From Oopsacas minuta (Eukaryota > Animalia > Porifera), in NCBI GenBank assembly GCA_024704765.1, contig JAKMXF010000011.1, forward strand, positions 479,557-543,556: DNA of 64,000 nucleotides, given 5' to 3'. Positions 7,062 to 31,339 of this stretch are shown here, piece after piece. Both the position numbers and the translations under genes were made by a program. The notes beneath the pieces were generated by a model that was not told the origin of the DNA, made no database searches, and worked only from the letters and a program-made list of their open reading frames with translations. Within the stretch, counting starts at the first letter, position 1; each line of letters starts with the position of its first letter.

Positions 7062-8171
7062 TAATCTTTAAAAAAGCTATCATTAGAAGAAGATATACTT
7101 TAGAAGTAATTTAATGTAGAAACAGTTAATAGACGGATACCAGGGTTCAATTATTCCATACAGATGTATTTGTGCTAGGCCTGACTCAGACAAGTTCAAG
7201 CCTTGGGACGAGTCGTACATTTGACAGATTATGACATAATACTTAGTCACTTTTTGAGGAATAAATATGAATTACTCGTAGAAACCTTGCTAATAGACGA
7301 ACTTCACTGGTAATTAGATGATATTTGACTATGTATCACCTCGTAATAAACCATCACATCTTAGAATTTAAAACTAACGATGAGTAAATAGAAATAAACC
7401 ACTGACAGTATTAAGTAGAGGAAATGATCAAATTGAATTTACATACAGTACGAGTGGCCTATATATTTTGATAATATAATTGAACTGTGACCCAAGAAAG
7501 GTCATGTATGTCCTTGGAACATGTTGAGTCGCTAAAATCAACATAAAAGGTCCAGCCGACAGACTGGTAGTGCTGCTCAGTGTTATGTGTTTTGTTCTTC
7601 TCAGGGGGGCACGCACCCCTGCACCTGACCACCCTGTGTAGATACCGCAATGCACCAAGACTGATTTTGGACTCCTGGATCTGAGAAATATTCCAGGATA
7701 TTCAATATTATTCGTCCCTGCTGAATTTAATGTTCTATTCTCAAATCCTATGGATAAAATTCTAAAGAATTATCCCACAATTATCCCCTGTCTAACTTTT
7801 GAAACTAATCTCTAGCATCAATTTGAAGTATATACAAAAAGGTGTGAAAATATGATCAATCATATGATTAATCACTCAGTGAGAGATTTGCAAATGTCAA
7901 ACTTCGTATTTTAGTTGCACTAAAATTACGAAGTGGCTATTGACACATACCTGTCAGTATCAATGGCCAATCTGTCGCTCTTATTAATACCGACCAGTGC
8001 TAATTTCTGGCCTTAGTACCAAACAGGCTGAGAGGTGTTGTCCAGATTCACTGGCACCGCCAAATTGTGCAATTGGGTATTTTGAAGCGAGCTACAGCTG
8101 TTAGATTTGATATTTTCGAATTACTGAGTACTTTGTTACCGGTTGGTGTCAAAAATGTAAATTGTCTCAAC

Positions 8172-8736
8172 CATAGCATTCTATACACTAAGGCAATGGT
8201 GCTGATTAATGGACTTGGACCAGGGATTGGGTAAGTCAGTTCTAAGGAAATAATTGAGATATATTAGTTGCGATAAAATTTAAACGGTACATTTTGGCCC
8301 GAATATATATATTATTGATGTTTGACATTACTCACAGTCTACATCTACAAACTATTTTCAGGCCAAAATGACGTCATCTGTTTGCTTAGTTAGCAAATAT
8401 GTCACAAAAATTCTCCTATTTTGAAACTACTTAAAGAGGAATTTAATACATTTACGGTTTCAAAATTTTACCATAGAATATACGGATGTGGCTGTACAAA
8501 ATATCAAATTTTTGTCATTATAAAGTTCCCGCGTTCCAGAGTTATAGTAGTGACCGTGGGTGGCATATTTGAGCCAATATTCATCCATAACTTGACATCC
8601 TTCAATGTTACGGCCAGACAAACCTACACACATATAGTATATACTCGACTTCCCATACCCTAATAATACATTATGGTGTGATATCTCTAAAGAATAATGC
8701 GCAGTCATCATTAATACCATATATAGTCATTTTCAA
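8172..8736 (+). repeat. Left terminal inverted repeat (L)
   Basis: Reverse complement of 8755-9275 (about 99% by eye) and of 30440-31339 minus the MITE (about 95% by eye). Confidence 0.95.
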
Positions 8737-8754
8737 GATTGCTTCATAATCATC

Positions 8755-9275
8755 AGAGATATCATATCAAAATGTATTATTAGGGTATGGGAAGTCGAGT
8801 ATATACTATATGTGTGTAGGTTTGTCTGGCCGTAACATTGAAGGATGTCAAGTTATGGATGAATATTGGCTCAAATATGCCACCCACGGTCACTACTATA
8901 ACTCTGGAACGCGGGAACTTTATAATGACAAAAATTTGATATTTTGTACAGCCACATCCGTATATTCTATGGTAAAATTTTGAAACCGTAAATGTACTAA
9001 ATTCCTCTTTAAGTAGTTTCAAAATAGGAGAATTTTTGTGACATATTTGCTAACTAAGCAAACAGATGACGTCATTTTGGCCTGAAAATAGTTTGTAGAT
9101 GTAGACTGTGAGTAATGTCAAATATCAATAATATATATATATATTCGGGCCAAAATGTACCGTTTAAATTTTATCGCAACTAATATATCTCAATTATTTC
9201 CTTAGAACTGACCTACCCAATCCCTGGTCCAAGTCCATTAATCAGCACCATTGCCTTAGTGTATAGAATGCTATG
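8755..9275 (-). repeat. Internal inverted copy of the TIR (R'), forming a 1.1-kb palindrome with L
   Basis: Ends in CTATG at 9275, followed by GGGGAAAC rather than the TSD. The shadow ORFs 8421-8663(+) and 8780-9022(-) differ by only one residue (N/S). Confidence 0.95.
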
Positions 9276-9628
9276 GGGGAAACGTATATTTCTAACATAC
9301 AAAAGTATGAAAATATTGTTGCACTTATTGTAATATATTTGATAGATTTTGTTCCGACAACTTTCAATGATTCACATTTTATCTTAGTTTAGTGATTTTA
9401 TACGTCTAATATGCCCCAAATTGACAAGTTTTACGTATTATACTTAATTAATTAAAACTGTATACGGTCAAAGCCTTTTGGGAGATTTTAGAGTCCGAAA
9501 AGGGCTGAAATTTGGTTGAATTTCGGGTTAAAAAGGTCGTTTTCTGATTGAGACAAGGTACCTCAGTCCTACCATCTACGGATAATATCTATTATATTTG
9601 TGCGAATTAAACAATGTAGCTATTTATC

Positions 9629-11105: not shown

Positions 11106-12137
11106 TTAAAGAGGTTCTGATGGTAATTTTGTATGTAACACATGACTATCAGCTGCCTGTACAAAAGGCAATGGATTAGCACACAGCATTTCAGGTAAAT
11201 ATTGAAAAGCGGAGAAAGAATTTCGCTGTGGAGTAACACTATCAAATGAGAAATCAAGTGAACGCAATAGTTCCGCATCTTGAACTATAGTGAAAGGACC
11301 ATCAAATGTATATTGTGCTGTCATATGATTTCTACTAAGTCTGCACTCAATATTATTACTGTTTGAAATACGAATTAATAATAGAGGCAATGTGAGGAGA
11401 GATTTAGCACGATATAATGAATGCTTATTCCTAGAAGCAAGTTTATTATACATAAAAATTCTCTGCCTCATTTCACGTAGACTTTCAGTTTTCTCATGAA
11501 GCACCAACTCTTTATCCTCTATTGTAGATTTTATTAATTGCTTTAGCCCAGGACCGGAATTAGGTGTACGAACTTTGAATCCATCCCCTGCCCATGTAAG
11601 ATTACGTCCGTCTTTATTTATCAGTCCGATTGAAGTGAGAACATTAATACAATCATAGAGTCTACGTCTTACACTAGACTGTAGCATGGTCAGATTATGA
11701 TCTTTATTGCAGTATATTTCATTAAGAAGGCTCTCAGCTAAAGCACAATTGGTTAGAGTGTGTGCCATTTCAAGTTTGGAGCAGATGAGAGGAGTGAGAT
11801 CTTGTAGCCGAGCCTTGAAAATTGGAGTATTATTCATCTCATTAGGACAGCTACACAATATATTATGCTGTAGGTTATCTCTCTGATCGAAGAATCCCAT
11901 TAGAGTACTTGAAGGTTGTTGATATTGGATACCAGTTGGGGTCAATGGAATGGGAATAACTTGCTCTATTGTATTATCTTTCACAGAAGCTTGGTCAATG
12001 GTACAACCGAAATAAGGCAAAACTTCGTTCTTACAACTGCCCTCGTTTGGTTTAGAACGTTTGCTTATAGATTCATTATAGATATACTCATCTTCTTTGG
12101 AGAAGAAAGTCTCTTGCTTTGTACCGAGATTCTGCAT
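11106..12137 (-). CDS. Divergent transcription factor DP (TFDP)-like protein, intronless, 343 aa
   Basis: Winged-helix DNA-binding domain with DEF box VRRRLYDCINVLTSIGLINKDGRNLTWAG. It is followed by a coiled coil and a DP-type domain (LTLPLLLIRISNSNNIECRLSRNHMTAQYTFDGPFTIVQDAELLRSLDF, compare DP1 [49 protein letters not shown]). Confidence 0.85.
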   Translation of the reverse strand: MQNLGTKQETFFSKEDEYIYNESISKRSKPNEGSCKNEVLPYFGCTIDQASVKDNTIEQVIPIPLTPTGIQYQQPSSTLMGFFDQRDNLQHNILCSCPNEMNNTPIFKARLQDLTPLICSKLEMAHTLTNCALAESLLNEIYCNKDHNLTMLQSSVRRRLYDCINVLTSIGLINKDGRNLTWAGDGFKVRTPNSGPGLKQLIKSTIEDKELVLHEKTESLREMRQRIFMYNKLASRNKHSLYRAKSLLTLPLLLIRISNSNNIECRLSRNHMTAQYTFDGPFTIVQDAELLRSLDFSFDSVTPQRNSFSAFQYLPEMLCANPLPFVQAADSHVLHTKLPSEPL

Positions 12138-13094
12138 TGATTATATGTTAGCGGCTAATAATTAATAGAATATTAATTATGGAAAATGCCGGTTATATCG
12201 AAACTCAAGGACAGCGATAATTATTTCGGTAGAAGCGGAGTTTCAATAAAACAGATAAAATTATGTTACTTCGACGGTTTGGAACAATATTTGTATAATT
12301 TACTACTTCGATATACGCGGGTATTTCTATATATCCATGTCCGGTATAATGGGAGTTGAGTGTAGGAATAGTGGAAATAAGGTTTTATAGGATTAGTGTA
12401 AAGTGAAAGTTTAATCACATGCATAGTATTAACGTAGTTTATGGTTACAATTAACCAATTGCTCAAAAGTTAAATCTGCGGAAATTTCACTTGAGAATTA
12501 CGACCCGAAAGAAACCATGTAATATTCCCCCTAAAACTTACCAGCGCTCCATTTTTGCATTTTTGCAGGACAGCACCCCACTGGACAAATTACATATTTC
12601 ATAAGATTCAGTATTTTTGTTTTGAAAAGTGGATGCTGGGGCACTTTTCATAATTCAATTTTTGCATATAATATTTTTAATGGTTGTACTTAGCACATTT
12701 AGCAATTTCCTCAATGTACAATGGTTAATTCAATCCTAATTACTCAACATACAAATCTAATGGAAATCTGAAAGAATGAAAAGGAGCGGGAGGGGAGTGC
12801 GCTCCTTTTCTGTGTAAGGAGTGGAAGTTGGACTCCACTCCATTTGGGGCTAGGAGCGGGGAGCGGGGACGCTTCATGCTCTGCATTTACGTAGATACAT
12901 ACAATCAAAATTCTCAAAACATCAATATTACAGAAGTAAAATAATACATACACTATATATATATATATATATTTATCAAAGATTTACAGAAAGGGAGAAT
13001 AAATATACACAAAGTTAGAATGGGGGAAAACTTAAAAGATCCAATCAATAGGATAGCTAAATTTATGTAAATGGGTACTCATTCTTGTTACTTG

Positions 13095-16000
13095 TCACAT
13101 ATTGCTTTTCTGTATATGTCTCCTTATAAAGAATGCCGCGATTATTGCAACGATTAAGATTACAACAATAATAAGCAGCAAGAATACGATTACTACAATC
13201 AAAACACTTTCTTGAGCAGCAAAGTCAAATGATGCACTTTGGAAGAATGTGGTGGGCACAGTGATTACCGGAAGTATTAGATAGTGGGAGACAACCTCAG
13301 AAAATGATTCTGGAGAATATGCGAACTGCATGTCCACACGAATTGTATAGTTGAAGTTGAGAGTTAATCCTTTAATGTTGAAGAATAGCTTCTCAGTGGT
13401 ACCAGCGAAATATTCAACATCTTCGTATCCATAGTATATTAAGAATTTCTCATCAGAGAGGGGCGTCTGCTCTGCTAACAAACCCCAGGTAACCAGGATG
13501 GAAGTGTCACTAGATGTCACAGCTGTTAGATCAGTTATTGCTTGTGAGTAGGTTGCTAGAGAGAATAGAAAAGAATTTAAGTTTTCCTGATTAAATAATT
13601 ATTTTAAAGATACTCACGAGAAAGAGAGAGTTGGATTTGAATAGCTAGCCTCTGTTCATTGTACCAATCTGTCACATAGAACATGTATACTCCTACATCT
13701 GACTCATCAAAGGATAAGAAAGTAATTGAATTGTCAGATACATGAGTGTCATCAGGTCTCTGCCACTTCCCAACAAGATCAACTGTCATAACTACATTCT
13801 TTGTCTGAACGATAATATAAGCTGTGTTGCCATCAGAAGTGAGTGACTCGAATGTTTGTACTGTCCCTGTATCCACGCTTATGACAGGTACTCCTGCGAA
13901 GTGTAAGGATATGGAATATCATTGCATGAATTGAATGAAAAGTGACTATTGTTTAATAATTGTACAGAACAAACCTTGCATAGATATTCCAGCACTCAGA
14001 ATGCTTTCGCTAGAAGTTTGATCTAGACATTCCATTAGATAGGTGTCTGTGTATTTGAACAGATTTCCTACTTCAAATACATTTAGTGGATTCTTAAAAA
14101 TGGAAAATGAGTCATTCTTCATCCAAACGAGTTCAGAAGATGAGATGGAGTTGTCAGGTGTGTGACAGAATAGAAATATATCATTATCTACTCCGAGGGT
14201 GTATTGGTATGATTCAGATGTCTCGATTACTAAAATGAAAATATTTAAATTTGGCAGAAACGGAATATCTTACATAAACTTTGTAAGAAAATTATCCGGT
14301 TTCTACTGTAGAAATACACAAAGCAATGAATCCAGAAATATGTAACCTTGTATGAGAGTTGTATCCAGAACAGTTACAGTGTATGTATTGCTGATACCGT
14401 CTGGTTGTTGTGTCACTTCACAGCTGTAGTAACCTGGATAGTTTATGTCCACTGACAAAACACTAGCTCCGTCAGCATCAATTGCACCAGTTCTACCAGC
14501 ACAAATACCAGCTAGATCTCTGTAACTCCAGGCAACTACTCCATTCAAACAGTAGAGATCTGTGTTTGCATTCAAAATAGAATTTGTTGATAATGGTCCA
14601 TATGTTGTTGGATCAATCTTCCCTCCAAATTGATTCACTAAATATGATAGTGAAGATTAGAATACTTGTTTGTCAATGTATTTCAATTAGAAGTTTAGAG
14701 GCAATACCTGTAAGATCTATCTGAATAGCAAGTGTATCCACATTATCCAAATTAGTGACATAGAACTTGTATACCCCCTGATCAAATAGTTGAAATGTGG
14801 AGAATGTCATTGAGCTTGTTGTGACCCAAGAGTAATCTGGTAGACGCCATCTCCCGGCTAGATTAACAGATAGAGCTACATTCCGTGAGAGTAGGTCAAG
14901 ATAAGCTTTATTGGTGTCTTCAGGGAGTAGAGGGTAGGATACCACAGATCCTGTGTTCAGTGTTATGACAGGTGGACCTGTTGATAGGATTAGAATAATT
15001 TCAATACTGATACATATAATGATATACTTAAATCTAATACACAAACCTTGAATGAGGATTTGTACATTGAATATTGGAGTATCATCCAAGGCATCTAGAC
15101 ATTCCATTGTATGGGTGTTTCCGTCGTCAGGAATGTCTGCAATGTTTAGAGGGTTCTGTTTCCTCTCACTGGTATCCATCTCTCTCCAACCGATCTCTCC
15201 AAAGGGAGCAGAGTTGTCAGGTTTGTGACAGAATAGGAAAGCAATATCTCTGTCTATCTTGACAGTGTAAGTTAATGAATGTGCAGCCTCAACGACTGAA
15301 GAATAGAAAATATGAGAATTGCAAATATGAAAGCTTTGCTATTTGAATTTGACTATACAACTATAGTGTAACCTCGTTAATAGTTAGCCCAAAAATGGTC
15401 AAAATTTGTTCGCATTATCCGGAGTTCGTATTAACCAAAGTAATACCAATTGACTAACTATTGTAGAGACCTGATTTGTGTAATTAATTGTTTGTCTTGT
15501 CCGGAAATTCGCATTCCACTGTATGTCTAAACATAACACATTAATGTTGCATACCTTTGTACACTTCTGTATCCATGACTGCAATTGAATACGTCTTACT
15601 GACACCATTTTCAGATACATAACAGCTGTAGTAGCCTACTTTGTCTGTAGTCACGAGTAACGAACTAAACCCAGTGAAGAAATCAGTTTCAGCTGATTGG
15701 GATGTGTTCACACCTTCTAGATCTTCATACTTCCAGATTACCTCAGGAATATCTATCACATCTGTTATGCAATATAGAGTAGTATTGGTAGTCAGCACTG
15801 AGAGATCTTCCAAATAGTTGTATTCTCTTAGAGCAATCTCTTCTCCAAATGGATACACTAGAATATCATAGCTACAAATCAAATGATTGAATGACATTAG
15901 TCCCCTATATAATATTCGATAGTTAACTATGGATAATAGATTTGATTTCGTATCTGATAAGAAATCTCCCCCTCCAACCCAGCTATGAGTGTCTCAAAAT

Positions 16001-19000
16001 GACCTTAAACAATATCCAAGCAGATAAACAAAATATATTACCCATGGCTAAATACTATCTAGTATATATGTGGACCATTTTCTTCAAAATAATCCCGTTA
16101 TACCTGTAAGCTGGATCTGAATAGCTAGTGTTTCTATGCTCTCCCAATTAATAACATAGAATTTGTATATTCCCTGATCTGATATCTCAAAAGCTGAGAA
16201 TGTTATGGAGTTATCTTCAACAAATGTTCCATTTGGTCTCTGCCATCTACCAGCTAGAACGGTAGCTAGAATTACATTCTTTGTAAGAAGATTAATACTA
16301 GCTGTGTTGTCACCAGGAGTTAGAGAAGAATAACTCTGAACCGTTCCTGTGTCCAGGGTGATTTCGGGAGGACCTTGTTTGAAAAGAAAAAATGAGCATA
16401 AGCATAGTGTATCTATTTAATCCCTAACGACAGAATAACCCAGATATATACTTCTACTCAGTATTCTAATGTTATTCTAATCAACAAACCTTGGAACAAT
16501 ATGTCAACAACGAGAATAGTATAAAGCGCGTCATTATTAAAGCATTCCAAAGTTTGCTTTCCATCAACAGTTGCACTTAATCCACCAACGTCAAAAAGAT
16601 CTCTAGTACCTACCTGGGTATTAAAGCTGTACCAATAATAGGAAAAGCGTAGAACACTGTTATCAGGTTTGTTACAAAGCAGAGATGTATCTATTCTGTC
16701 AATACCCTTTGTATAAGTGAAAGAATTCGTATCTTCAATTACTAAAGTATAATTCTCGTTAAAATGAAGTGCTCGGGACCACAATTTCATGTCGTTATAA
16801 GCGAGTAATTCAATAACTTTCAAGATATAGAGGGGAAAGAATCACTTCGTTATAACGAGAGTTACTATAGAGATATTAAAAATGGAATTCGCGATTCAAG
16901 TCACAATAAGCTCACCAGTAACAAGTGATGGATCCTGCAGACTGAATATATAGCTTCTGGTTGTCGCCATAAGCGTAACCTGACATTCATAGTATCCTGG
17001 TTCATTTGTTTGTACTGATAGTATACTAATTCCTGTGTCAGGATCAGTTGTAGGAGATTTGGTAATTATAGGTTGATTACTAGGGTAGTAGAACCAATAT
17101 ACCGGGTCTAAAGCTTGGTACTCTGTTATGCAGTAAATCATTGTAGTAGCAAGTAAGAGAGAGTTGTCTTCTAAGGCGATGTATGTATTTGAATCAATCT
17201 TCTCTCCAAATGGATAAACTAAATATTTATAGAAAATATCAACTTTTCCAAAATAATACAAACAAGTAGGTGAGGATCGGTGAAATCATAACATTTGTAT
17301 ATTGTCTATTTTGAAGAGGCACAATTCGCAATCTAAACCACGCGAATTGGCTTGTGACTCTAATTGCTAATGAAAATATACGTAGTATTGCAATCACATA
17401 CCTGTTAGTATTATCTGCATAGCTAGCGTTTCTTCATTATCCCAGTTCATTATATAGAACTTGTATAAACCTTGATGGGTTGTATCAAAAGTTTGGAATA
17501 TTATTGAATTGTCTCCCACAAATGTATCATCTGGTCTCTGCCATCTACCAGGAGTATCTACATGCATACCTACATTTTCTACCATTAGGTTAACAAATGC
17601 TCTGTTGATATCAGGAGATAGTAGCTCGTAATAGGACGTGGTTCTTTCATCCAGTATTATGACAGGTGGTCCTGTAGACAATAGTACATTTTAGCTAATT
17701 CAGTTAACATAAAGTCATTAGCATTCCATGAATATTTACAATATACTCTATTCATATTTTATGGGTAAATATATTTAGTGTTCGCTTATTTACGAATTGA
17801 AATTGGCATGAACCTCCTTAACTTGTGATCATAGGAAGTACAATAACACCAGCTAAAACCGCTCCGTTTTGCTCCACTGACGACAGGAGGGGTGTATTAC
17901 AGCCTATGGGAGGGTCCACAGGATGTGTTATAATAGGTATACGGGGGTTCACGGGTGAAAAGGTTGGGAACCATTGTATAAAAGCAATTGAATGGAACAA
18001 ACCTCTAATAAGGAGATCAAAATAGTGTAACGATTGTCCACCAGTGATAGAAGTACACTCAAATTGACGATTCATTCCAATATTGGGTAAATTGCTTATT
18101 TCTAATGGGTTAGTTACTTCTTCACTTGTGGTAAGATCTGTCATACCAGTCTCAGAAAAAGCTACCATACTATTGTAACAGAATAGGAAAATATTGTCTG
18201 CATCTACTCCAATGGTGTATGTATATATTTCTCCACCCGTTTCAGCTAGATAATTGTAATTCATAATTTATGTATTTAAGTTCGGAAATGTTGGACAGTT
18301 GGAAAGTATGAAAAACATAAACATAAACAAACTACACAGAATAAATTATGCAAACTATAATATCTACCTGTATATATTGATGTGTTAAGAATTGCTACAG
18401 TATAAGTATATCCGCCATCTTCATTCACTTCACAGTTGTAGTATCCAGGTTCATCTATGCCTACTGTTAACAAACTAATCCCAGTCTCCAGCTCAGTATC
18501 AGCTTCTAGATTACTAATTGTGCCATCTAGACTCACGTATCTCCATGTTACAAATGGATTGCTAGATCCATCTATGCAATATAGAGTTGTACTAGCTGTA
18601 ATGATAGAATTGTGTTCGATGCTTTCATAAATATTTGCAGATAATTGCTGTCCAAATCGATACACTAAAAATTCGTTGATCATTTATAGCATATTTAGAT
18701 TGCATTAGTTTACATATATTGATCATAAATAATACATACCTTTTAAGGTCAGGGAAGCAGCAAGGCGTTCAGTGTTCTCCACATCAGTGACCAGAAAAGA
18801 ATATACATATCCATCAGAAAGTTCAAATGTTGGGAATATAATAGAGCTACCATCTCCAACAAGTTCATCATCTTGGTTTGTCCATCTACCAACTAAATTA
18901 GAACTTAGGACTACATCTGTGGCTCTATAGTTAATGCTATATTCATTTTCTATTATAACATTAGTCTGAGTATCTCCAACATCAAGGGTTACTTCAGCTG

Positions 19001-22000
19001 GACCTGAAATTTGGTATTTTACTCAAAATAACAAATAAAGTATATCAAGATAGAAAATAATTATCCAGCGATTATCGTTAGAAATTTGATAGGAATTTGA
19101 ATATAAACCAATTCGATGACCAAACAAGTAACAAATCTATATTTGTAAATCACAATTGTTGTTTGTTTGTCCGTTGTCAAGGAAAGGATTTACGGTATGC
19201 AATTTTGAAATTGTCGCATAACTATGTATTTGCTTCCTTGATGTTTATCAAGGAAGTAAATAGAATTCAAATAAAACTTCACTAAATATATCGAACATGC
19301 TGAATCCGATTTTCACACTTTTGGATTAATCATATGTAAATTTATTGTTGTTGTTTTATGAATAGCAAACCAAATAACAAATTAGCAAAATCTCAAATAT
19401 GAGTACAGGCTTGCTACAAAGGGAGTTGATCTTACAAAATAATTCAATAAGGTATATGCCATGTACGTATATTTGTGAATTACATTGTTCTCAATATATC
19501 TATATTATAATACTCAAAGGAGGCGTCAATTTGGAGAATAATGGATATCTTGAGGCGTAATGAGCAGAGTTCATCGCAAAGCGATGAGCGAAAGGCTCGT
19601 AAAATATAAAATTTGTAGACATGCTGAGCACTTTGGCAAGTTCTTTCATGTAATTATATTTAACAAACGTTGAAGTATGAGATCTATATTCAATATTGTC
19701 ACATTGGCACGTGAATCCAAACATTCCATTATTCTTCTTTCCCCATCTATCTGTAGATTTGATATTTGTAGAGGATTAGAATAGATATTATTTGTACCTA
19801 ATTCTCTCCAAAAGATCTTCTCAAAAGGCACTGAATTGTCAGCTTGGTGACAGAATACATATCTAGGTTCAGTATCTATACCTTTTGTGAATGTGTAAGA
19901 TTGTGAAGCCGAAATAACTGCAAGAAATACAAAAAAGTTTCAAGAAATATTAGATAAGTTGATAAATTGTATATTTGATATACAAATATAATTACAGTAG
20001 ACTCTCCATTTTCACAAATCTGCTTAACAGAGGGGTCATTTCGTGACGGAAGGGATCGCGGGACCAGGCCATATTCTCCGATAAACTGGAAAAAAGATGT
20101 TGGCTCTATTAACCGTTAAAAGCAATTTAACACTAGCTATTTGGGACTGTTTCTGGCCAAGAGTGACCCGATTAACGGGTGGATAATAAGTGGAATCCAT
20201 CGTAATTACATCAAATTTATATATTTAGAAAACCTGAAATTTCATTCGAGGTTTCATCAAACGCAGCTGCAGTGTATGTGTTGATAATATCACCGTTTTT
20301 GGTCACAGAACATTCAAAGAAACCCTCATCGTAACTTGTCAAGGAAATTGTAGTGATTGTTGTTGTGATTACAAGTCGTCTCATTCTCAGCGACTCAATC
20401 ATCCCTGCAAAGTTAATTCTTACCCAGCTTGCAGTTGTATCAAGTTCACCCCAGCAGTATAGATCGTCATTTAAGGATACTATTGAATTGTCATCCAGAG
20501 GTATATAATTGGAACCACTTTGTATTCCGAATGGATACACTAAATGAATATAGAGGTCAGGTATCAGACTGGGGGAAAACATAGATACAAGACCTTTCAC
20601 ATCCAAAAGGAAAAGTGAAATCCTGTATCAAATCTTGCATATACAGTAACTCTGTCTAATCAGATTATCCGAACCTAATTAATCTCAATACGAACAGGGT
20701 TATACAACCTTTGGAAAATGTTCTAAAATGTTCTAAAATGTTCAAAAAGTGCTAATTCCATCCAATTCTACTGTGGCACATACATAATATTATATTACAC
20801 ATGTTGGAAGCCTTTTCATCGATGGTACAACTTATGAAAATTTTACACCTATATCCTAAGTATTATTTCAATCATAGCCATGCTATGCTTCAATGTATTC
20901 ACTAATCTGAACGAATTATTTAGCTCTTGGGACAGTGCTGTTCGGATTAGCTGTATTATACAATAGATTTGAGTTAAAAAGAGTATTTCTTCATAAAAGG
21001 AACAAACCTAATATTTCGATCAGATATGCTAATTGTTGTTCTTTATTCCAATTAATCACATAATATGAGAACAATCCCGCAATATTTTCATCAATTAGAT
21101 TTAATGCTAGTGGATTTGAATTTCCTGCACGGCCAGCAGGAGTGATCCAATCCAGCAATGAATTTTGTAGATTGATGGCAAGAAGTAAGTCATCCTGGTA
21201 TCTAACATATACTGTATTGACTTTAGGAGGAAGGAGAGGGTAGCTTTCTCCATAAATTGTAACTACAGGTCTACCTGTGAATACACAAAAATATAATTCA
21301 TATGGATATCATGTGTCAAATGTTGTATTATGGAAAACAGGGAACAACTGTGCCGACCATACATTAGTATAGTGGTTTTGTATTAGCTTGGAGGATGGTC
21401 ATTTTTAGTGAAGCTCTTATAGGGAGATACCGCATGGAAGATATGCGACGTCCATACGTCCGGCCATCAGCGCGGTTGTGCTAAATCTAGCAGCACATTA
21501 TCAAGAAAATTGATACCCATATACATTTTGGGTTGGAGATTTGCACCTCGGGTATGAATGTTTGATAAATGAAACTTCACACCTTTCTGGTGATTAATCA
21601 ATCGTGTTTTCACAACTTTCTAAGTAAAATAACACAAAAACCAATACACTCATTGGAGAAGGTGAGTTTCAATCACTTTCCATGAATCCGAAATAACCTT
21701 CCTACAAATTAACAAAAAACTGTACTATACTACAGCTATATAAAGAAATCTCTATGAGAAATACTGTCGAGTTATTCAAGTAACATTACCCTGTATAGTC
21801 AGATCTACAGCAAATAGTGTTATATTAGTGCTAGTATCAACACACTCTATCTGGTAGCTGTTTATAGGAAGGCTAGTAACATCCAGAGGATTTGGCAGGT
21901 AAACAGATGCACTTTGTCTCCAGCCAATATTTTCAAAAGCTATTGAGTGGTCAAAACTGTGGCAGAATAATGAGATATCTTCTCTGTCTATCCCGTGTGT

Positions 22001-25000
22001 GTACGTATAAGTATCTTCAGCAGAAATTACTATAGAAAACATAAGAAATGTTTTAGTGTTAGATAATCAGAATGTGGAGATTAGTAGAGTGCCAGAAATC
22101 TCAAGTGACGGTGATCAATTGAGAAGCACAGCCATGGCCTCAGACTGGATAGGAGAGGCTCAGGCCATTTGGCTATCTTCCCGAAAATGAGTACATATTA
22201 TCAAATATTTGTGATGATTATTCGATGAAATTTCAATTTTTGGAGGCCCCCTTAGAGCGTGAGGCCCAGGCCTAATGGCCCTACTGGACACCTCTCAGAG
22301 GACCTAAGTACAGGCATAAATACAACAACATACTTGTAGTGATAGATGGCTCCAGAAGTGCTGCAGTATACTTCTTCCGTTCTCCTCTGAACTGTGTAAT
22401 TTCACAGCTGTAGTATCCTGGATTATTTATATCGATATACAATGAACTAGCCCCAGTGGTAGCATTTGTTGGAACATCATAAGTACTCATTGTCCCATCT
22501 AGACCGACATAGCTCCAGATAACTCGTGGAGTACCTAACGGCTCTGTAATACAGTGTAGAGTACTTGAAGCTGTCAGAATTGCATTGTCATACAAAGCTG
22601 TGTATCTGTTAGCTTCGATAAGTTTACCAAATTGACTCACTAAAGAAAATATTATAATTATAAAATATACAAATCAGATAAGACGTATTATCCGAGTTCC
22701 GCTGAATTTATACAACATTACCTTCATTTGTGCAGAAGTAACAATTGTTTTGAATACTACAATCGATAGAAAACCAACCAAGGTCAAGTAAAGCAAAACA
22801 GTGATCCTGACTCCTACGAGATCTAACGCGTTCGTTGGTTTCAACACTTCTACGGCGAGCCCCTGGAAAGAAGTTAATATATGTAACGCGACTATCATCA
22901 ATCCAAGTAAATTGGTTTGCCTGATCCAAACCTATCCAACAAGAATTCACATCATTAGTAAATAGACTTAACAACAAGTTATTCTCTTTACTAGAAGATA
23001 TTGAAGCTAGATCTCCCCTATTTGCTTCACAACTTGATTGAGCATCATACCAATCTATTCCATCACCATTGTATGTATATGTGAAACAATCTCCGTCATC
23101 AGATATTACGTCACATCCAAGTAGCGGATCTACAAAATTATTTATTCAATAATCTACGAAATTTGCAAACTACAGAATTGCCCTGAATAAGCGCCGGAGT
23201 ATTCTACTGCACGATAAATCTAGAATTACAATCTCTGCCTACAGCATACAGGGCCGATAATACCCTGAGTGTCCTGTGTGTTTGGACACTTACTGCTACG
23301 AAAGACTTTCACATTACCTTCTATGACAATGGTTGTTTAGATACCCACTCTACATCCTCATGGACACCCATTGGCTCTAATAGGCAGCGCCGGCCATAGG
23401 ACATAGCACGTACCACTATTGAATTTATATTTTTAGTCGCACTAAAATTGGAGGTACTATAAGACAAAGATTTTACTCCAATAATCATAGTGCTTCCAAT
23501 TAATAGCGTCACTGTGAATACATTCAAACCCCATTTTCAAAATTTCATCCTCGTCTCTACATTAGAATTTTGTTAGAGTCCTTCTTCCCTTCGCATGATT
23601 ATTATTCAAAATAACTTTGTCATTACCTGCATATGTGATTGGAGCAAGTATTACAGAAAATGATTTGGGTCCATCGTTAGGATTCACATTACAAATGTAT
23701 GATCCTGGATTCGTTATGCTTAAAGTCAAAGCACTTACTCCCTTGCTGGAACCTGTTCTACCTGGTATTGTTGTAGCAATACCGTCCACATCAATATACA
23801 CCCATTCAAACAAATTTACGTCCTTAGTACTTGATACACAGTGAATGGTTTGACTCTGTGTCAGTATAGCGTTGTATGGTAATGCTTCAATATGAATTGT
23901 ACCGACATCATGTCCAAATGGATCCTCTAAACAATTACAATAAGTTAAAGAGAAGTTTACCGTATTTACTATAATCTCTAATGAGTTTACAGTAATTGAA
24001 TGCATCATAGAAAATTTTGTGGATTTGGAACTACAATAACGTAATAGAGATTTGATTAACTACAAAAAATAGCTTTGTATAGGCTAAACTGGGTGGGTAT
24101 TAAAATGGTATTTCAATATTTTGTGATTTTTCTCAACTTTATATGTCTTCTAGATTTTCGTAAGTAAAATAACAAATTTAGCTAAAACAGAGCTCTTTAC
24201 AATTTCCTGATTTTGTTAGATCTAATTACATCATAGATCAACAATTCTTACATGTGTTCATGACTACTAGCTATTTCAGATAGAAACTTTAGCAATTTTC
24301 CAATTTTGAGAGTTGAATAATATAAAATTGTGACCTGATAGAGCATAATAGAATTCAGATTCGGAATCAGCATAATGGAGGGTACATAATGCAATTTATA
24401 GTTTCAAAGAAGCAAAATTTTGTATATTGACAATGAAATTTAGTAAAAATTACCTAAATATATTCCTGTCTCCAATAATGCTACCGTATATGTCCTAAGG
24501 ATCCCATAATCTTGAGTAACATCACAGCTGTAGAACCCTGGTGCATCCAACTCAATATCCAACTTGCTAATACCAACATTATCAGTCGTGGTTGAAGCGA
24601 TAGATCCCTTAGAACCAAACAGGTTATCCAAATCCAAATAATACCAGCTGACTTGTTGCCCTAGCTCTGTAACACAAAATAGTTCTGAATCTGAGGTTAG
24701 GATTGAATTATCTTCCAAACTTTCGTACGAGTTTCTTGAACGCCCAAAAGGAGTTACTAAAATTAGCAAGCAAAATGTATTGTAAATGTTTTACTTAAAA
24801 CATTAAACAATCCCTATAACAAATATACTGTAGAAGAGCCTATGAGGCTATGACTGTGCTTATATTTTGAAATTTTGTTATCAAACTTTACCTGGAGAAC
24901 TGCAGAAGAAACATTGCCTATAATCACAACAATCTACATCATACCAATAAGAGTCTGGAGTTATTTGTGCACAGTCCTCATCTCCAGTGGCTTCATCTGG

Positions 25001-27663
25001 TTGACCGTAACCCCAATTTGTGTACGTTACTGCACTTCCCTTGTCCCATTCATATTCATTTTCATTTTCTATGTCATTAAATCCTATCCAGCAATTTGTG
25101 TGTGTTTGATCATCTGCAATGCTGTACATAACAGCATTCTCAAGGCTGGAATATATTGAGGCTATTGTCTGGTCATCTGCATAGCATAAACGTTTAGCAT
25201 TTTCCCAATCGACCGCCGTACTTACTTGCACATAGTTAAAACACTTTCCAGTGCTAGATATTGCATCACATCCTTTCAAATCAGGAATTAGAGTGTTTGG
25301 AGCTACAAAGAATAATCAAATAATATCTGTATTGAAATATCAAATGTTCTATGACGTAATAATTACCTATGTAAATGCATATAAAATGTAAAATCCGTGG
25401 CTATGGGAATTCACATGGGAATGGAAATCATTTCTGGCTATGGGAATTTCCATGTATTCTCTGTACTAAGCCAAGTGCATTCTATTTGAGATGAATAAAT
25501 TCATTTATCAGGGTTACCATCGGGATGGGAATTAAAATTCCGTACCCACGGCAGCCCTGCGTATATTTCATAGTTTATCTGCTCACAAGAATTTTTGTAT
25601 TATAAACTTTTTACCCAAAATATTATTCTTTCTAAATATTAATGTAATATATACCTTTTTGTATGCAGAAGAAGCAAACATACTCCCAAGTGCAAAGACG
25701 ATCATACCAAAATCCGTTATTTCTAATTGTCGTACAGTCATGATTTGTATTGCTGGGCTCAGTACTATGCCAATTGGTATATTCACTAGGATTTCCATCT
25801 ACCCAGGTATAAGCGGTAGCACCGATATTGTTATATCCTATCCAACATCTATAAACAGCAGAACTGACGAAGTCAGTAAACTTTGTATTCTCTGCAACTG
25901 AAGATATGGAGGCTAGATCTCCCCCATTTGCTTCACAAATTGATTGAGCATTCGCCCAATTTATTCCCTGATCTTCAAACACATAGGTTACACATCTTCC
26001 ATCATCAGAGATTATGTCACAGTCACTTCCTGATACTACAAAATAAAACAAAATTTAATTAGTAATAATTGTGCTGAACTCATATTTATTCAAACTGTAC
26101 ATGTAACTTTATCCATATTACCCAATTCCCGAGCATTCGTTGATTCATTCTGGTTTAAGTAGACAAATTTAAGGACTTTTCTTACCAGCAACCTAGGTTA
26201 CTACATAGAAATATTACAGCTACCTAGGTGCTAGATGCCCTTCAGCAAATATCTAGTGACGTGAATCATGGGTTGCTGGTTAGATAAATCCTTAATGAAG
26301 TAATCAGAATTATTCGAATAATTCAAATTATACTAAAATATTCAGTTTTTAGGGAATTAAGAATTTTGGAAAATATTTTGTACAAAGAATCTAAATAGGT
26401 TTTCATTTTCATAAAATTTGATTAATAGGATGAGAAAATTGGTAATTTTAGAAAGCAGGGGCCAATGGTAAGCTTTTAAACTGGTGTGTCTGCACCTGTT
26501 TGCGCGTAGTAGTAACTGCTATTTGGTTGGCACCGACCTCAGAATACGAATAATATTTGTGAATATAATTATATTTATTTCCTAATTCCCATTTTTCAAT
26601 GAATAAGTCAACTTAGGTCAGTGGTTCCAACCTTTTCTGTTAGTGGACCCCATATGCCAATATAAACGCATCCTGTTGACCCATCCATAGACTGCAATAG
26701 ATCCTGAGGTCCCCCTCTTTGTCGTTCGTGGACCCCTGGTTAGGAACCGATGAGTTAGGTAGTATAACTATTGTGTTTCTAAGATCCACATACGATTTGG
26801 ATATTCTGAAAACGTGTTATAGATACTTTGCAATAATATTGATCTTATCTGATCAATTTCAAATTCACAATAGAAATTTTCATCCAATTATTCAGATCAG
26901 GCGACTATTCGAGCAAATACTTATGCATTGTAATCAACTTACATAGTGTATCACATTCAATATAGACATGTTCATCATCACCACAGTGACCTGTATCAAA
27001 GCTAGAGTAGGCTCTGTATGAACATTCAAGTATATTGGTCTCACTACCAGGACACCCTAAGTTAACAATTCTGTAATTTGTATCCGAGTCATACCGAGCT
27101 AATTCAACAAATACTGCCCAGCGATATCCTAATATACGACATATCACATCTCCATTATACTCACTCCAGCTATCGTCACAGATAGGTCCCCAGGCTCCTT
27201 CAAAATAGGCTTCTACGATACCATAGAATCCACTTGTCAGTCTTATGTCTCCTTCATCTGTAGTATAATTTGAAATAATTTTAAATTTTACAATGTGACA
27301 TGTAAATAGTGTCGGATTATTCAGGCGAATTTGCATTATAGGAAGATGATATAATACACTGTACAGTTAACTCCCTTTATATCGAAGCTCAAGAGACCGC
27401 GATAATTGCTTCAATATCCACGGAGTTCGATCTAACTGATGAAATATGTTACTTTGACGCTTTGGGACAATATTGGTACAATTTCATACTTCGATTTAAC
27501 GGGAGATAACTGTTTGTAATAATTTTATTAGAATAACAAAACAATCTATATATGCGAAGCCAGTTAATTATTTATTAAAACATATACCTGCCTCACAAGA
27601 AGATCCAGAGATTCGCTGAATAACCAAAATTAGAAACAAAAATATCAAAATACACACTTTCAT
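13095..27663 (-). CDS. 26-exon single-pass receptor: signal peptide-SRCR-CTLD-CTLD-IgA-IgA-CTLD-(IgA-B-C)x6-FN3-TM-short tail, about 2,521 aa
   Basis: Exons read by hand, all bounded by AG/GT and all phase 1: 27663-27588 (signal peptide MKVCILIFLFLILVIQRISG), 27257-26943 (SRCR, AWGPICDDSW), 26035-25655, 25302-24892 (CTLD), 24756-24454, 23926-23627, 23129-22722 (CTLD), 22639-22334, 22029-21790, 21274-21008, 20539-20234, 19917-19669, 19003-18740, 18664-18368, 18245-18003, 17671-17402, 17218-16916, 16741-16490, 16373-16104, 15857-15555, 15295-15047, 14977-14708, 14637-14347, 14229-13975, 13893-13618, 13555-13095 (FN3 + TM). Internal exon lengths are all multiples of 3 and I found no stops. The total of 7,566 nt is divisible by 3. 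Confidence 0.85.
19150..19430 (+). repeat. Intronic relative of the Helitron-like repeat at 29680-30114
   Basis: Shared TTTGTCCGTTG..AAGGAA and ATGCTGAATCCGA.T..CAC blocks. Confidence 0.5.
26619..26752. mobile_element. hAT (Charlie-like) MITE in a receptor intron
   Basis: TIRs CAGTGGTTCCAACC / GGTTAGGAACCGATG. Flanks ACTTAGGT / AGTTAGGT match at 7 of 8 bases. Confidence 0.7.
27364..27512. mobile_element. pogo/Tigger-like MITE in a receptor intron
   Basis: TA|CAGTTAACTCCCTTTATATCGAAG ... CTTCGATTTAACGGGAGATAACTG. Confidence 0.65.
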
Positions 27664-29224
27664 TTTAAAACAATAATATTACATTTATGAATATGAATGT
27701 AGAGTTATGAATTTGTGTAAATAAGAATTTGATTTATTATATATCTACAGATGTGTCAGGTTACACTGACTCATGAAATACTTTTCAAATATGATGAATT
27801 CTGGATCATCATTGCCATACACGACACATTTGCATTTATTCATTATCACAACTGATAGAGAGTAAGTGTGTCTACATATACAGATGTTTAAGAATTGGAT
27901 GAATAAGTTCAGCTATATTAAGTTCAATTATAATACATTGCTAAATGCATCAATCAGACAATTAAGGTATCTTTGGATAAATATTGCTGTTTGCCACATT
28001 TGTAATTCCAGACGTCAGGAGGCAAATTTAGTCATTGTAGAAGGAATATTTTATGATTGTTTTATGATCTGTAGCATATTCTGAGCCAGAATACATCGAG
28101 AGGGCCAAATGGGCAAAAATGAGGTTTTGGGTGGAGCTGCATTAGTGCGAATTTGGAGTGTTGGCATTAGTTTTACTCAATTTTTGGAGAATAGACTTTA
28201 AAATATAATCCACTACAATATAGAGAAGTTATTCTCGGAGCCTAAGGTCTTGATAGCAAAATCCTAAGACTCTAGTGGTCCAACATTTTTCTGAGGCCCC
28301 TGGCGTCCCAGCTCCAAATTTTGTCCCAGGATCCGATAGTTACAAATGCAAATTGAATTGTATATTTCTACAAAAAATCACCGTGAATAAGGGCAGACAG
28401 TTGAAAGTGAATAATTAATCCAATAAAGAGTCCTATCACGTTCCCGTTTCTAAAATCCCTTATTCTATCATTATCTCCTTTATTCCCATAAATATCTCCT
28501 TTTTAATGCCATTTCATATTTTTCTAACACTGAATACTTCCTTAAATTTCTAAAAAACCTACACAATCATTTTAAACCCAAAAATCCAACCATCATCTAT
28601 ATAGGTGTGAAATAGTACAAAATAGTACAGTAAATGTAAGTCTAAATGTAGGGTCCTAAAGCGAAATTACACTCTAGGACCCTATGGTCTTAAGAATGAT
28701 GCAGGACACTAGGGTCCTATATATAATTTCCCTACTATATATATGTCCAATCTATTAGAGAAAACAAGAATAAGTAAATATTTAGGCCAGAGTCACTATT
28801 TGGATAGCAGTGATGGATTTTATAGCATTATCGTTGGATCTGGCCCTGAAAATTCGCTGGAAGTTTTTGGCATACCTATGTGTTACCAATCTTTAGAGTT
28901 ATCTTTCTCTAAGTATTGCCCTTCCAATGCGGATACCATTTTAAGACAACATTTTTGACGATCTTCTCTCTCTATTATTTTTGTATAGTGTAGATATATA
29001 TTGGGGAATTATTATATATGTTTTTCATTCTCAAGGGTACCAAAAGTAAGAAATTTCTATTTTAGTTATGTCGATCTTTTAATTAACTACATGGTCGAAA
29101 ATATTTCTAAATTCAATTCTACACATCACCCTTATCCAATTTATTGGCTTTATTGCTTACATGATCTAAATTGCCTCTAATAGTAGTTATAATCTGTTTG
29201 ATTCCACTCGACATTTAGTTTATT

Positions 29225-29670
29225 TTGTTCATTTTATTGTTTTTGGCTTCTCTAGTTTGTAAAAATTCTCCTGAAAAGTTTTGTTATATTTGTGGGAGGT
29301 ATACTACAGCTGACCAACGACAAAATATCACAAAGGCTGTAGAACGCTGTTATTTCGCTTATTTTGGATGCCATCTTGGGGATCAAGATAAGCCGTGGGC
29401 TCCACACAATGCCTGAAAGACGCTTGTGGTATGCTGGGAAGAGAAATATAATCCCGTTTGCGGTTCCAATGATATGGAGAGAATCAATGTGTCTTCTTTC
29501 GGATTGTTATTTCTGTATGACGAAAATTGATGGTATCACAAAAAAGAATAAATCCACTATTGCGTATCCAGACGTACCGTCCGCCATTAGGCCAGTTCCA
29601 CATTCAGAGGACCTATCTGTACCAGTTCCATTGGAAATATTGGACATTTGCAGTGACAATGATAGTAGTG
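29225..29670 (+). pseudogene. N-terminal remnant of a Chapaev3-like transposase
   Basis: CKNSPEKFCYICG...YFGCHLGDQDKPWAPH, then a frameshift into PFAVPMIWRE...DCYFC...YPDVPSAIRPVPHS. Homologous to the 32556-33000 transposase. Truncated by a downstream repeat. Confidence 0.75.
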
Positions 29671-30439: not shown

Positions 30440-31339
30440 TTGAAAATGACCATATATGGTATTAATGATGACTGCGCATTATTCTTTAGAGATATCACAC
30501 TATAATGTATTATTAGGGTATGGGAAGTCGAGTATATACTATATGTGTGTAAGTAGGTTTGGCCGTAACATTGAAGGATGTCAAGTTATGAATGAATATT
30601 GGCTCAAATATGCCACCCACGGTCACTACTATAACTCTGGAACGCGGGAACTTTATATTGACAAAAATTTGATATTTTGTACAGCAATATCCGTATATTC
30701 CATGGTAAAATTTTGAAACACCGTAAATATATTAACTTCCTCTCTACGTAGTTTCAAAAGAGGAGCATTTTTGTGACATATTTGCTAACTAAGCAAACAG
30801 ATGACGTCATTTTGGCCTCAAAATAGTTTGTAGATGTAGACTGTGAGTAATGTCAAATATCAATAATATATATATTCGGGCCAAAGTGTACCGTTTAAAT
30901 TTTATCGCAACTAATATATCTCAATTATTTCCTTAGAACTGACTTACCCAATCCCTGGTCCAAGTCCATTAATCAGCACCATTGCCTTAGTGCAGGGTTT
31001 CTTAACCGGGGGTCCATACCGTCGAGCAGAAAAGGAGTTTCATGTACTTTGCAAACTTTGCATTCTTTTATATAAGAAATATTTTTTCTCGCAATTATCA
31101 TAACATACTAATTCTGAATCATACAAATTTTACTAATATACTAAATATCTAGTAATTCATAAGACCATAGTTTTCTTCAGATTTATCATGCGAGCGAATA
31201 AGAAAATTGTGCCAACTTAACGCATTATTTAGTTTGTACAGTTTCTGGACAGGGGTCCATAGCTTTCACTAGATCTTCATAGGGGGTCCTTCACTTCAAA
31301 AAGGTTAAGAACCCCTGCCTTAGTGTATAGAATGCTATG
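30440..31339 (-). repeat. Right terminal inverted repeat (R) interrupted by a hAT MITE
   Basis: Reverse complement of 8172-8736 once 30993-31325 is removed (567 bp versus 565 bp). Confidence 0.95.
30993..31317. mobile_element. hAT MITE (325 bp) with perfect 8-bp TSD
   Basis: TIRs CAGGGTTTCTTAACC / GGTTAAGAACCCCTG. TSD CCTTAGTG at 30985-30992 and 31318-31325. The empty site is visible in R' at 9254-9261. Confidence 0.95.

Follow-up and report, generated by a model that had tools for sequence, protein, structure and literature searches.

A tandem triplet of divergent immunoglobulin-like modules in a receptor family of the glass sponge Oopsacas minuta

Which domains compose an extracellular unit that recurs six times in a single sponge gene, and what kind of receptor do they build? 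The question is raised by a stretch of 64,000 nucleotides from Oopsacas minuta (contig JAKMXF010000011.1, positions 479,557 to 543,556; hereafter the window, to which all positions refer), in which a preliminary description had noticed six tandem copies of a three-exon unit, A-B-C, that it could assign to no named family. Our analysis indicates that the triplet consists of three divergent immunoglobulin (Ig) subtypes, with B probably among them, and that it contains no new fold. The gene that carries it belongs to a large family, many members of which are predicted to be receptor tyrosine phosphatases.

Gene model and triplet array

On the minus strand, the region 13618-22639 contained 18 exons (six A, six B and six C) in strict A-B-C order, as determined from stop-free segments and alignments. 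Each module was encoded by one exon, and a scan for AG and GT sites placed a polypyrimidine-AG acceptor and a GT donor at its borders, in phase 1 on both sides. The exon lengths (A, 291-306 nt; B, 240-255 nt; C, 264-276 nt) were all multiples of 3. These results confirmed the six copies first described, whose outer limits proved to be the acceptor of A1 (22639) and the donor of C6 (13618), and the alignments also reproduced the consensus motifs given for the modules. Because the copies within the gene were only 26-55% identical (means of 36.5% for A, 36.3% for B and 39.9% for C), the triplet duplications must be old, as had been proposed. The identity matrices of A, B and C were uncorrelated (r -0.22 to 0.23), and congruence of duplication histories was uninformative. 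A chance origin of the order can be excluded, since hidden Markov models (HMMs) of the modules matched independent paralogous exons elsewhere at E values of 1e-20 to 1e-42, and these again always followed A-B-C.

The array lies within a gene of 26 exons that runs on the minus strand from 27663 down to 13098 (Table 1). In the encoded protein, a signal peptide is followed by an SRCR domain, two C-type lectin-like domains (CTLDs), two A modules, a third CTLD, the six A-B-C triplets, a fibronectin type III (FN3)-like domain, a transmembrane (TM) helix and a tail. The gene product is present in GenBank as KAI6661496.1 (P0153; "hypothetical protein LOD99_13369 [Oopsacas minuta]", 2,521 aa), and all 26 exon translations matched it exactly, with a single split-codon residue between neighbours. 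Every exon was open, the splice sites were canonical with matching phases, and the 2,521 codons were intact. The genes of the published assembly were predicted with RNA-seq hints (PMC10280926), and because the public annotation model spans the same 26 exons, the exon junctions are independently supported. Our searches were performed exon by exon, and this public protein was the sole full-length sequence used. The triplet array accounts for approximately 65% of it. The preliminary description had expected an extracellular protein of roughly 2,500 aa, in agreement with the length, signal peptide and TM helix of KAI6661496.1; the signal-peptide exon, the two additional A exons (A0 and A0b), the exon for the FN3-like domain, TM helix and tail, and the large gene family are new relative to it.

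The SRCR domain and three CTLDs that had been placed upstream of the triplets were recovered above the Pfam cut-offs (SRCR, 60.1 bits against 26.1; Lectin_C, 49-60 bits against a gathering cut-off of 22.6). A Pfam scan of the full KAI6661496.1 returned only these four domains above cut-off, with weak Ig matches. CTLD2 aligned with the CTLDs of DEC-205, MRC1 and PLA2R (E values to 1.8e-38) and carries QPD at the EPN/QPD position, where it aligned with the EPN of a DEC-205 CTLD; CTLD1 reads EPS...WYD. The last exon encodes one hydrophobic helix followed by a 9-residue basic tail and is kept in six paralogous loci at 66-94%. No cytoplasmic protein tyrosine phosphatase (PTP) domain is present in the window gene, whose last exon stops 9 residues past the TM helix.

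Fold of the three modules

Module profiles were built from non-redundant paralogous exons (24 sequences for A, 19 for B and 20 for C). Against PDB sequences, the A profile matched Ig domains only, including those of FcRL5 (3e-11), NCAM2 (1.2e-6), CEACAM1 (1.2e-6) and titin (1e-6; one stretch, positions 4-81). Both cysteines of A were invariant in all 24 aligned copies and stood 49 residues apart, the YxC motif corresponded to that of an Ig F strand, and the tryptophan was invariant in the eight A copies of the window. The 49-residue cysteine spacing points to the I-set/C2 type, and thus module A is predicted to be an I-set/C2-like Ig domain with the canonical Cys...Trp...Cys pattern. None of the 24 copies reached a Pfam Ig cut-off; the best, A5, scored 20.9 bits against 21.8 for the model 'ig', and 11 of the 24 gave weak Ig_3 matches.

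Module C possesses no cysteine in any of its six window copies and was matched by no Pfam Ig model in 20 copies, and its profile gave weak sequence matches to the Ig domains of Hoc (1.6e-3), JAML (4e-3) and Kit. AlphaFold2 (AF2) models were obtained for C4 and B5, folded separately. The C4 model showed eight strands, with a pLDDT (predicted local distance difference test) of 91.4 and a pTM (predicted template-modelling score) of 0.81. In a VIA search with this model, the top 50 matches were all Ig domains, headed by Kit D1 (Z 9.2; root-mean-square deviation 1.7 Å over 70 residues) and an amphioxus IgVJ-C2 molecule (Z 8.7), followed by MDGA1, OPCML and NCAM2. Foldseek assigned a probability of 1.0 to Ig domains of LRRC4, NCAM and LINGO, with E values of only ~5e-3. 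In the A-C profile alignment, a phenylalanine of C stands at the place of the second cysteine of A. Ig domains without a disulfide are known, and we are confident that module C, as modelled, is a C2/I-type Ig domain that has lost its disulfide, with Leu/Val and Phe in place of the cysteines. The C profile also picked up multi-Ig proteins, three of which were scanned (P0006, P0007 and P0012) and contained Ig_2, Ig_3 and I-set as well as the bacterial-type CHU_C, SprB and PKD; these bacterial-type multi-Ig matches are consistent with C being Ig.

In module B (~82 aa), Cys65 is invariant among the 19 copies, Cys22 occurs in at least 90% of them, and Trp36 is the consensus residue. The cysteine counts in the preliminary description, which had called A Ig-like with two cysteines and had given two to B and none to C, were borne out in the aligned copies. 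In an hhalign comparison with A, which was not significant (E 0.064), Cys22, Trp36 and Cys65 of B fell on the Cys/Trp/Cys of A; pairwise hhalign detected no significant sequence relationship among A, B and C. The AF2 model of B5 (pLDDT 79.9, pTM 0.67) contained only four DSSP strands. Its best structural matches were mostly Ig-like or cadherin-type sandwiches at Z 5.2-5.8, covering 70-78 of the 82 residues, and included IL-12 p40 D1 (Z 5.8), PDGFR D2, gp130 D1, Dpr4 and NCAM2 Ig1. The B profile had no match among PDB sequences, Foldseek returned nothing at E<=1e-3, the ESM Atlas yielded no usable match, and none of the 19 copies matched a Pfam Ig model. Weighing these results, we consider it quite likely that module B is a short C2-like Ig domain.

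It could be argued instead that B and/or C are new non-Ig folds, which would make the triplet a categorically new extracellular unit. Such a view draws on the Pfam results for both modules, on the empty PDB and ESM Atlas searches with B and on the modest Z scores of the B5 model. However, it is refuted for C by the AF2 model and its exclusively Ig matches, and the multi-Ig proteins found with the C profile also oppose it, while B has the Cys-14-Trp-28-Cys spacing of Ig domains in addition to its mostly Ig-like or cadherin-type matches over most of its length. We therefore regard it as very unlikely. The earlier statement that the modules were unassignable holds with respect to Pfam, where the three did not all hit Ig profiles strongly (none of 19 B and none of 20 C copies matched, and A lay just under the threshold); it does not hold for their fold, A and C being assignable to Ig and B probably so.

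A large receptor family in the genome

The O. minuta genome itself (~61 Mb in 365 scaffolds) was searched with the module HMMs, which gave lower bounds for the exon matches: at least 150 A, at least 85 B, at least 105 C and at least 150 CTLD. In the seven further arrays that were read (C11:601-606k, C277, two in C111, C16, C312 and C44; C11 is the contig of the window), the A-B-C order was kept without exception. The annotated paralogues P0002, P0152 and P0156 contain exactly six triplets each, and P0004 also keeps the order. The exon-match coordinates further revealed a four-module CTLD-A-B-C period of ~2.1-2.7 kb in six regions and CTLD-A pairs with a period of ~1 kb (Table 1). SRCR was found beside the modules at only four places in the genome, and most family members lack it.

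Triplets 5 and 6 of the window gene, which lie next to the membrane, were positional orthologues of those in the C16 gene, with B and C 82-89% identical, whereas the distal triplets were only 30-50% identical to those of the paralogues. Identity to the paralogue also differed greatly between exons of one triplet (for example, 33% for A beside 89% for B and 82% for C), which suggests that exon shuffling or conversion has occurred within the family. Because the phase-1/phase-1 exons are symmetric, the triplet could duplicate and shuffle as a unit.

The paralogue P0004 (KAI6650360.1) has the module order C-(ABC)3-A, followed by FN3, TM and two PTP domains (Y_phosphatase 3.5e-116, two stretches). 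It maps to C312:354439-362026(+), where FN3, TM and both PTP domains are encoded by one exon of 2.3 kb. Homologous PTP exons were located directly 3' of many other arrays: five in C345, two more in C312, and others in C111, C17, C222, C321 and C33. Because FN3-TM-PTP-PTP exons close these arrays, a large part of the family is predicted to consist of receptor tyrosine phosphatases with lectin/Ig-triplet ectodomains; the window gene is a tail-less, SRCR-headed member of the family. LAR/PTPmu-type receptors resemble paralogues such as P0004 in combining Ig-type repeats, FN3, TM and two PTP domains; in contrast, the window gene lacks a phosphatase, and the sponge ectodomains use CTLDs with A-B-C, a combination that we did not find described.

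Since the triplet modules are invisible to standard annotation, several paralogues have been automatically misnamed "mannose receptor", "CD23" or "PLA2 receptor". The CTLDs of the window protein are indeed closest to those of DEC-205, PLA2R and MRC1, and it shares the type I topology and short tail of that group. However, no ricin-type Cys-rich or FNII domain was found in the full-protein scan of KAI6661496.1, and it has only three CTLDs (as opposed to 8-10) together with 20 Ig-like domains, which are absent from that family. Membership of the mannose receptor family was rejected on this domain content.

To look for relatives outside O. minuta, the C profile was compared with 1.84 billion representative sequences. 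The 158 matches fell into three groups: O. minuta proteins, 88 short single-exon open reading frames (ORFs) from ENA, and weak, partial matches to multi-Ig/PKD proteins. The C modules of two ENA ORFs were at best 57-60% identical to anything in the O. minuta genome, and these ORFs must therefore come from another species. Among the ORFs of that species, one holds B then C and another C then A, which argues that the A-B-C cycle is conserved there. Word-based searches gave a single O. minuta protein with CTLD2, only O. minuta proteins with residues 1547-2094 of KAI6661496.1, and one ENA ORF with the B5-C5 frame; none of these searches revealed a full-length relative beyond O. minuta. The 69-nt intron between B5 and C5 (14978-15046, minus strand) is in frame and free of stops, giving an open frame of 221 codons (14676-15338) across both exons. 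Two ENA ORFs of another species, P0015 and P0154, similarly have B and C joined in a single frame, ~23 residues apart.

The preliminary description did not recognise the architecture. Our literature search also found no paper describing a CTLD/Ig-triplet family, and the O. minuta genome paper makes no mention of lectins, phosphatases, SRCR or gene-family expansions (PMC10280926). As far as we could find, neither the super-repeat of triplets, nor the two Ig subtypes missed by annotation, nor the expanded family of CTLD/Ig-triplet receptors and phosphatases has been described, while the component folds are known and the protein itself was already deposited as a hypothetical one.

Two copies of the window gene, ~94% identical to it in exons and introns, were found at C277:406972-418293 and C11:600457-608041. 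The C277 copy contains an in-frame TGA in its C3 exon and, judging from architecture and contig, seems to have been split in the annotation into two proteins, KAI6653444.1 and KAI6653443.1. The other copy lies 100 kb away on the contig of the window; it is inverted and partial, beginning inside A3, and its first B exon is interrupted by a TAA. Comparison of the window gene with the C277 copy revealed purifying selection on B (dN/dS 0.39, p 0.003) and C (dN/dS 0.27, p 4e-7; binomial tests), and the A exons looked neutral (dN/dS 1.13). The dN was equal among the modules (~0.025), and only dS differed, with a four-fold spread (A, 0.022; B, 0.061; C, 0.095). The ratio near 1 in the A exons is thus caused by low dS, not by high dN, and positive selection on A was rejected. 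Gene conversion, constraint on synonymous sites or chance may account for the spread.

The receptor gene is followed downstream by a gene of the same orientation, which consists of one open frame and is predicted to encode a DP-type transcription factor partner of E2F. The two genes are flanked on one side by a 1.1-kb palindrome with two arms of ~550 bp, 96% identical in reverse complement, and on the other by one further arm copy (92-96%), an arrangement suggestive of a foldback-type repeat.

Table 1. Positions of the exons of the window gene, of neighbouring features and of related arrays and PTP exons elsewhere in the genome
Feature	Position	Strand	Basis	Residues of KAI6661496.1
Exon 1: ATG and signal peptide, 25 codons + 1 base	27588..27663	-	phase-1 donor CAG/GTATAT; Kyte-Doolittle 3.85	1-25
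SRCR exon	26943..27257	-	Pfam SRCR E 2.8e-16	27-130
CTLD1 exon	25655..26035	-	Pfam Lectin_C 3.4e-14	132-257
CTLD2 exon	24892..25302	-	Pfam Lectin_C 3.9e-16	259-394
A0, additional A-type Ig exon preceding the triplets	24454..24756	-	aligns with A1-A6; module HMM 8e-35	396-495
A0b, second extra A-type Ig exon	23627..23926	-	module HMM 2.8e-33	497-595
CTLD3 exon	22722..23129	-	Pfam Lectin_C 1e-12	597-731
A1 (triplet 1, Cys-Trp-Cys)	22334..22639	-	alignment, HMM	733-833
B1	21790..22029	-	alignment, HMM	835-913
C1	21008..21274	-	alignment, HMM	915-1002
A2	20234..20539	-	alignment, HMM	1004-1104
B2	19669..19917	-	alignment, HMM	1106-1187
C2	18740..19003	-	alignment, HMM	1189-1275
A3	18368..18664	-	alignment, HMM	1277-1374
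B3	18003..18245	-	alignment, HMM	1376-1455
C3	17402..17671	-	alignment, HMM	1457-1545
A4	16916..17218	-	alignment, HMM	1547-1646
B4	16490..16741	-	alignment, HMM	1648-1730
C4 (folded by AF2)	16104..16373	-	alignment, HMM	1732-1820
A5 (best Pfam 'ig' score)	15555..15857	-	alignment, HMM	1822-1921
B5 (folded by AF2)	15047..15295	-	alignment	1923-2004
C5	14708..14977	-	alignment, HMM	2006-2094
A6	14347..14637	-	alignment, HMM	2096-2191
B6	13975..14229	-	alignment, HMM	2193-2276
C6	13618..13893	-	alignment, HMM	2278-2368
Last exon: FN3-like, stalk, TM helix, tail RRHIQKSNM, stop	13098..13555	-	Pfam fn3 E 0.011	2370-2520
Predicted DP-type gene	11109..12140	-	Pfam DP 4.7e-14, E2F_TDP 2.8e-8	
Palindrome	8171..9276			
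Further palindrome-arm copy	30440..30992			
CTLD-A-B-C arrays	C345:197-222k(-), C99:5-19.5k(+), C111:371-403k(-), C312:326-335k(-), C67, C92		exon-match coordinates	
CTLD-A pair arrays	C343:557-568k and 348-354k, C14:94.5-97.3k, C44:612-615k, C188:560-566k		exon-match coordinates	
PTP exons, C345	194962-196983, 208068-210158, 184383-186536, 228141-228989, 11778-12623		homology to P0004	
PTP exons, C312	346411-348738, 338586-340346		homology to P0004	
PTP exons, C111 and C17	C111:391223-392077; C17:43452-45521, 28515-29327		homology to P0004	
PTP exons, C222, C321 and C33	C222:423397-424221; C321 (four); C33:629611-631341		homology to P0004	

Proposed function and its alternatives

On account of its topology and domains, the window protein is probably best read as a cell-surface recognition or adhesion receptor. 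We consider it likely that the 26-exon gene encodes a type I membrane glycoprotein with a triplet-Ig stalk that serves adhesion or recognition. The suggestion of a pattern-recognition or adhesion receptor in the preliminary description is plausible on this basis, being strengthened indirectly by the signal peptide, the TM helix and the phosphatase paralogues. The 20 Ig-like domains and the FN3-like domain would form a long extended stalk, in line with the rod-like shape first proposed, and would hold the SRCR and C-type lectin head far from the membrane. The protein may bind a ligand, glycan or protein, that is presented by other cells, by the matrix or by microbes. Because it lacks a signalling tail, it might serve in adhesion or capture; alternatively, it might partner the PTP-bearing paralogues in ligand binding or be their decoy.

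Several points weigh against an adhesion or recognition receptor built in this way. First, CTLD2 has WYD for WND and EDC for ENC, and CTLD3 has neither the EPN/QPD nor the WND sugar-binding motif, so that the lectin activity of the CTLDs is uncertain. Second, the FN3-like domain of the window gene scored 16.4 bits (E 0.011), under the Pfam fn3 cut-off of 25; the corresponding region of P0004 scored 29.7 bits. Third, the fold support for module B is moderate, with Z below 6 and few DSSP strands. Fourth, any interplay of the window protein with the phosphatase paralogues is purely conjectural. Finally, the locus appears to be in flux, because both of the nearest copies have in-frame stops, and the window copy could also be losing function, though its codons are intact.

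Two known designs offer a comparison for the stalk and head. CEACAM5 and the PSG proteins contain an Ig super-repeat, N-A1-B1-A2-B2-A3-B3, and resemble the window protein in repeating a fixed set of C2-type Ig subtypes in the stalk, one exon per domain, with phase-1 introns; CEACAM chains were also among the structural and sequence matches of the modules. They differ in having two subtypes three times rather than three subtypes six times, in lacking an SRCR/CTLD head, and in their GPI anchor or TM helix with a signalling tail, and no sequence relationship exists beyond the Ig fold. Selectins likewise carry a C-type lectin head on a stalk of repeated small domains, with a single TM helix and a short tail; however, their stalk consists of EGF and sushi/CCP domains, not Ig, and there is no homology outside the CTLD.

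Among the alternatives, a microbial pattern-recognition receptor, whose SRCR and CTLD head binds microbial glycans while the Ig stalk is a mere spacer, is possible but doubtful. SRCR and CTLD are classical domains of such receptors in invertebrates, and the sugar-specificity position of CTLD2 is still occupied by QPD. Sponges have expanded SRCR families (PMC10855680; PMC4772301), and in two sponge species microbial signals elicit a response of receptors with SRCR and Ig domains (PMC6208332). On the other hand, the calcium/sugar site is incomplete (WYD), most family members lack SRCR altogether, and a passive spacer would not be expected to take up ~65% of the protein or to require the purifying selection observed on B and C.

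Glass sponges are syncytial. They discriminate self from non-self and re-aggregate, yet the aggregation-factor genes of demosponges are missing from them; in Aphrocallistes, a C-type lectin has been implicated in re-aggregation (PMC5400394). The window gene might accordingly be viewed as an allorecognition determinant, a glass-sponge counterpart of Hydractinia Alr or of the aggregation factors of demosponges, with variable distal domains that bind homophilically or in an allele-specific way. In favour of this view, the family has many members, arranged in clusters, and includes very recent duplicates as well as pseudogenised copies, and its membrane-proximal triplets are conserved between paralogues while the distal ones have diverged. 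The Alr proteins, too, form a large clustered type I family with many pseudogenes and an FN3-like fold near the membrane, and their Ig domains are not seen by sequence motifs but only by structure prediction (PMC9546547). However, they have one to three Ig domains (V-set and I-set), often tails with ITAM or ITIM (immunoreceptor tyrosine-based activation or inhibition motifs), and neither CTLD/SRCR nor triplet arrays, and allorecognition has been shown for them (PMC9546547), whereas it is putative at most for the sponge family. The likeness is thus one of kind, not homology; the window protein has no ITAM or ITIM in its short tail, and the near-neutral ratio of the A exons stems from low dS. 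Taken together, we find this alternative unlikely. The same low probability applies to a broader proposal, in which the family as a whole would be the missing adhesion and self/non-self system of glass sponges, working through paired receptors, PTP-signalling and tail-less; the triplet super-repeat would then set the reach of the receptors, and the shuffling of symmetric exons would generate their diversity.

Finally, a decaying or mis-annotated locus, that is, a pseudogene or fused gene models, would fit the stops in the two closest copies and the apparent annotation of the C277 copy as two proteins, but it is hardly credible given that all 26 exons are open with canonical splice sites, a single public model spans them exactly, and purifying selection acts on the exons of B and C.

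The recognition or adhesion receptor thus favoured belongs to a family of which standard domain annotation has seen little: it fails to detect approximately 65% of the window protein and, in a genome that is very compact, hundreds of exons. Once B and C are recognised as subtypes of Ig and A-B-C as a single unit, three HMMs become available with which the whole receptor family, including its expanded receptor tyrosine phosphatases, could be annotated. A large, clustered, exon-shuffling receptor family would be a concrete candidate for self/non-self recognition in glass sponges, and it bears on how early receptors of the Ig superfamily and phosphatase signalling diversified in animals.

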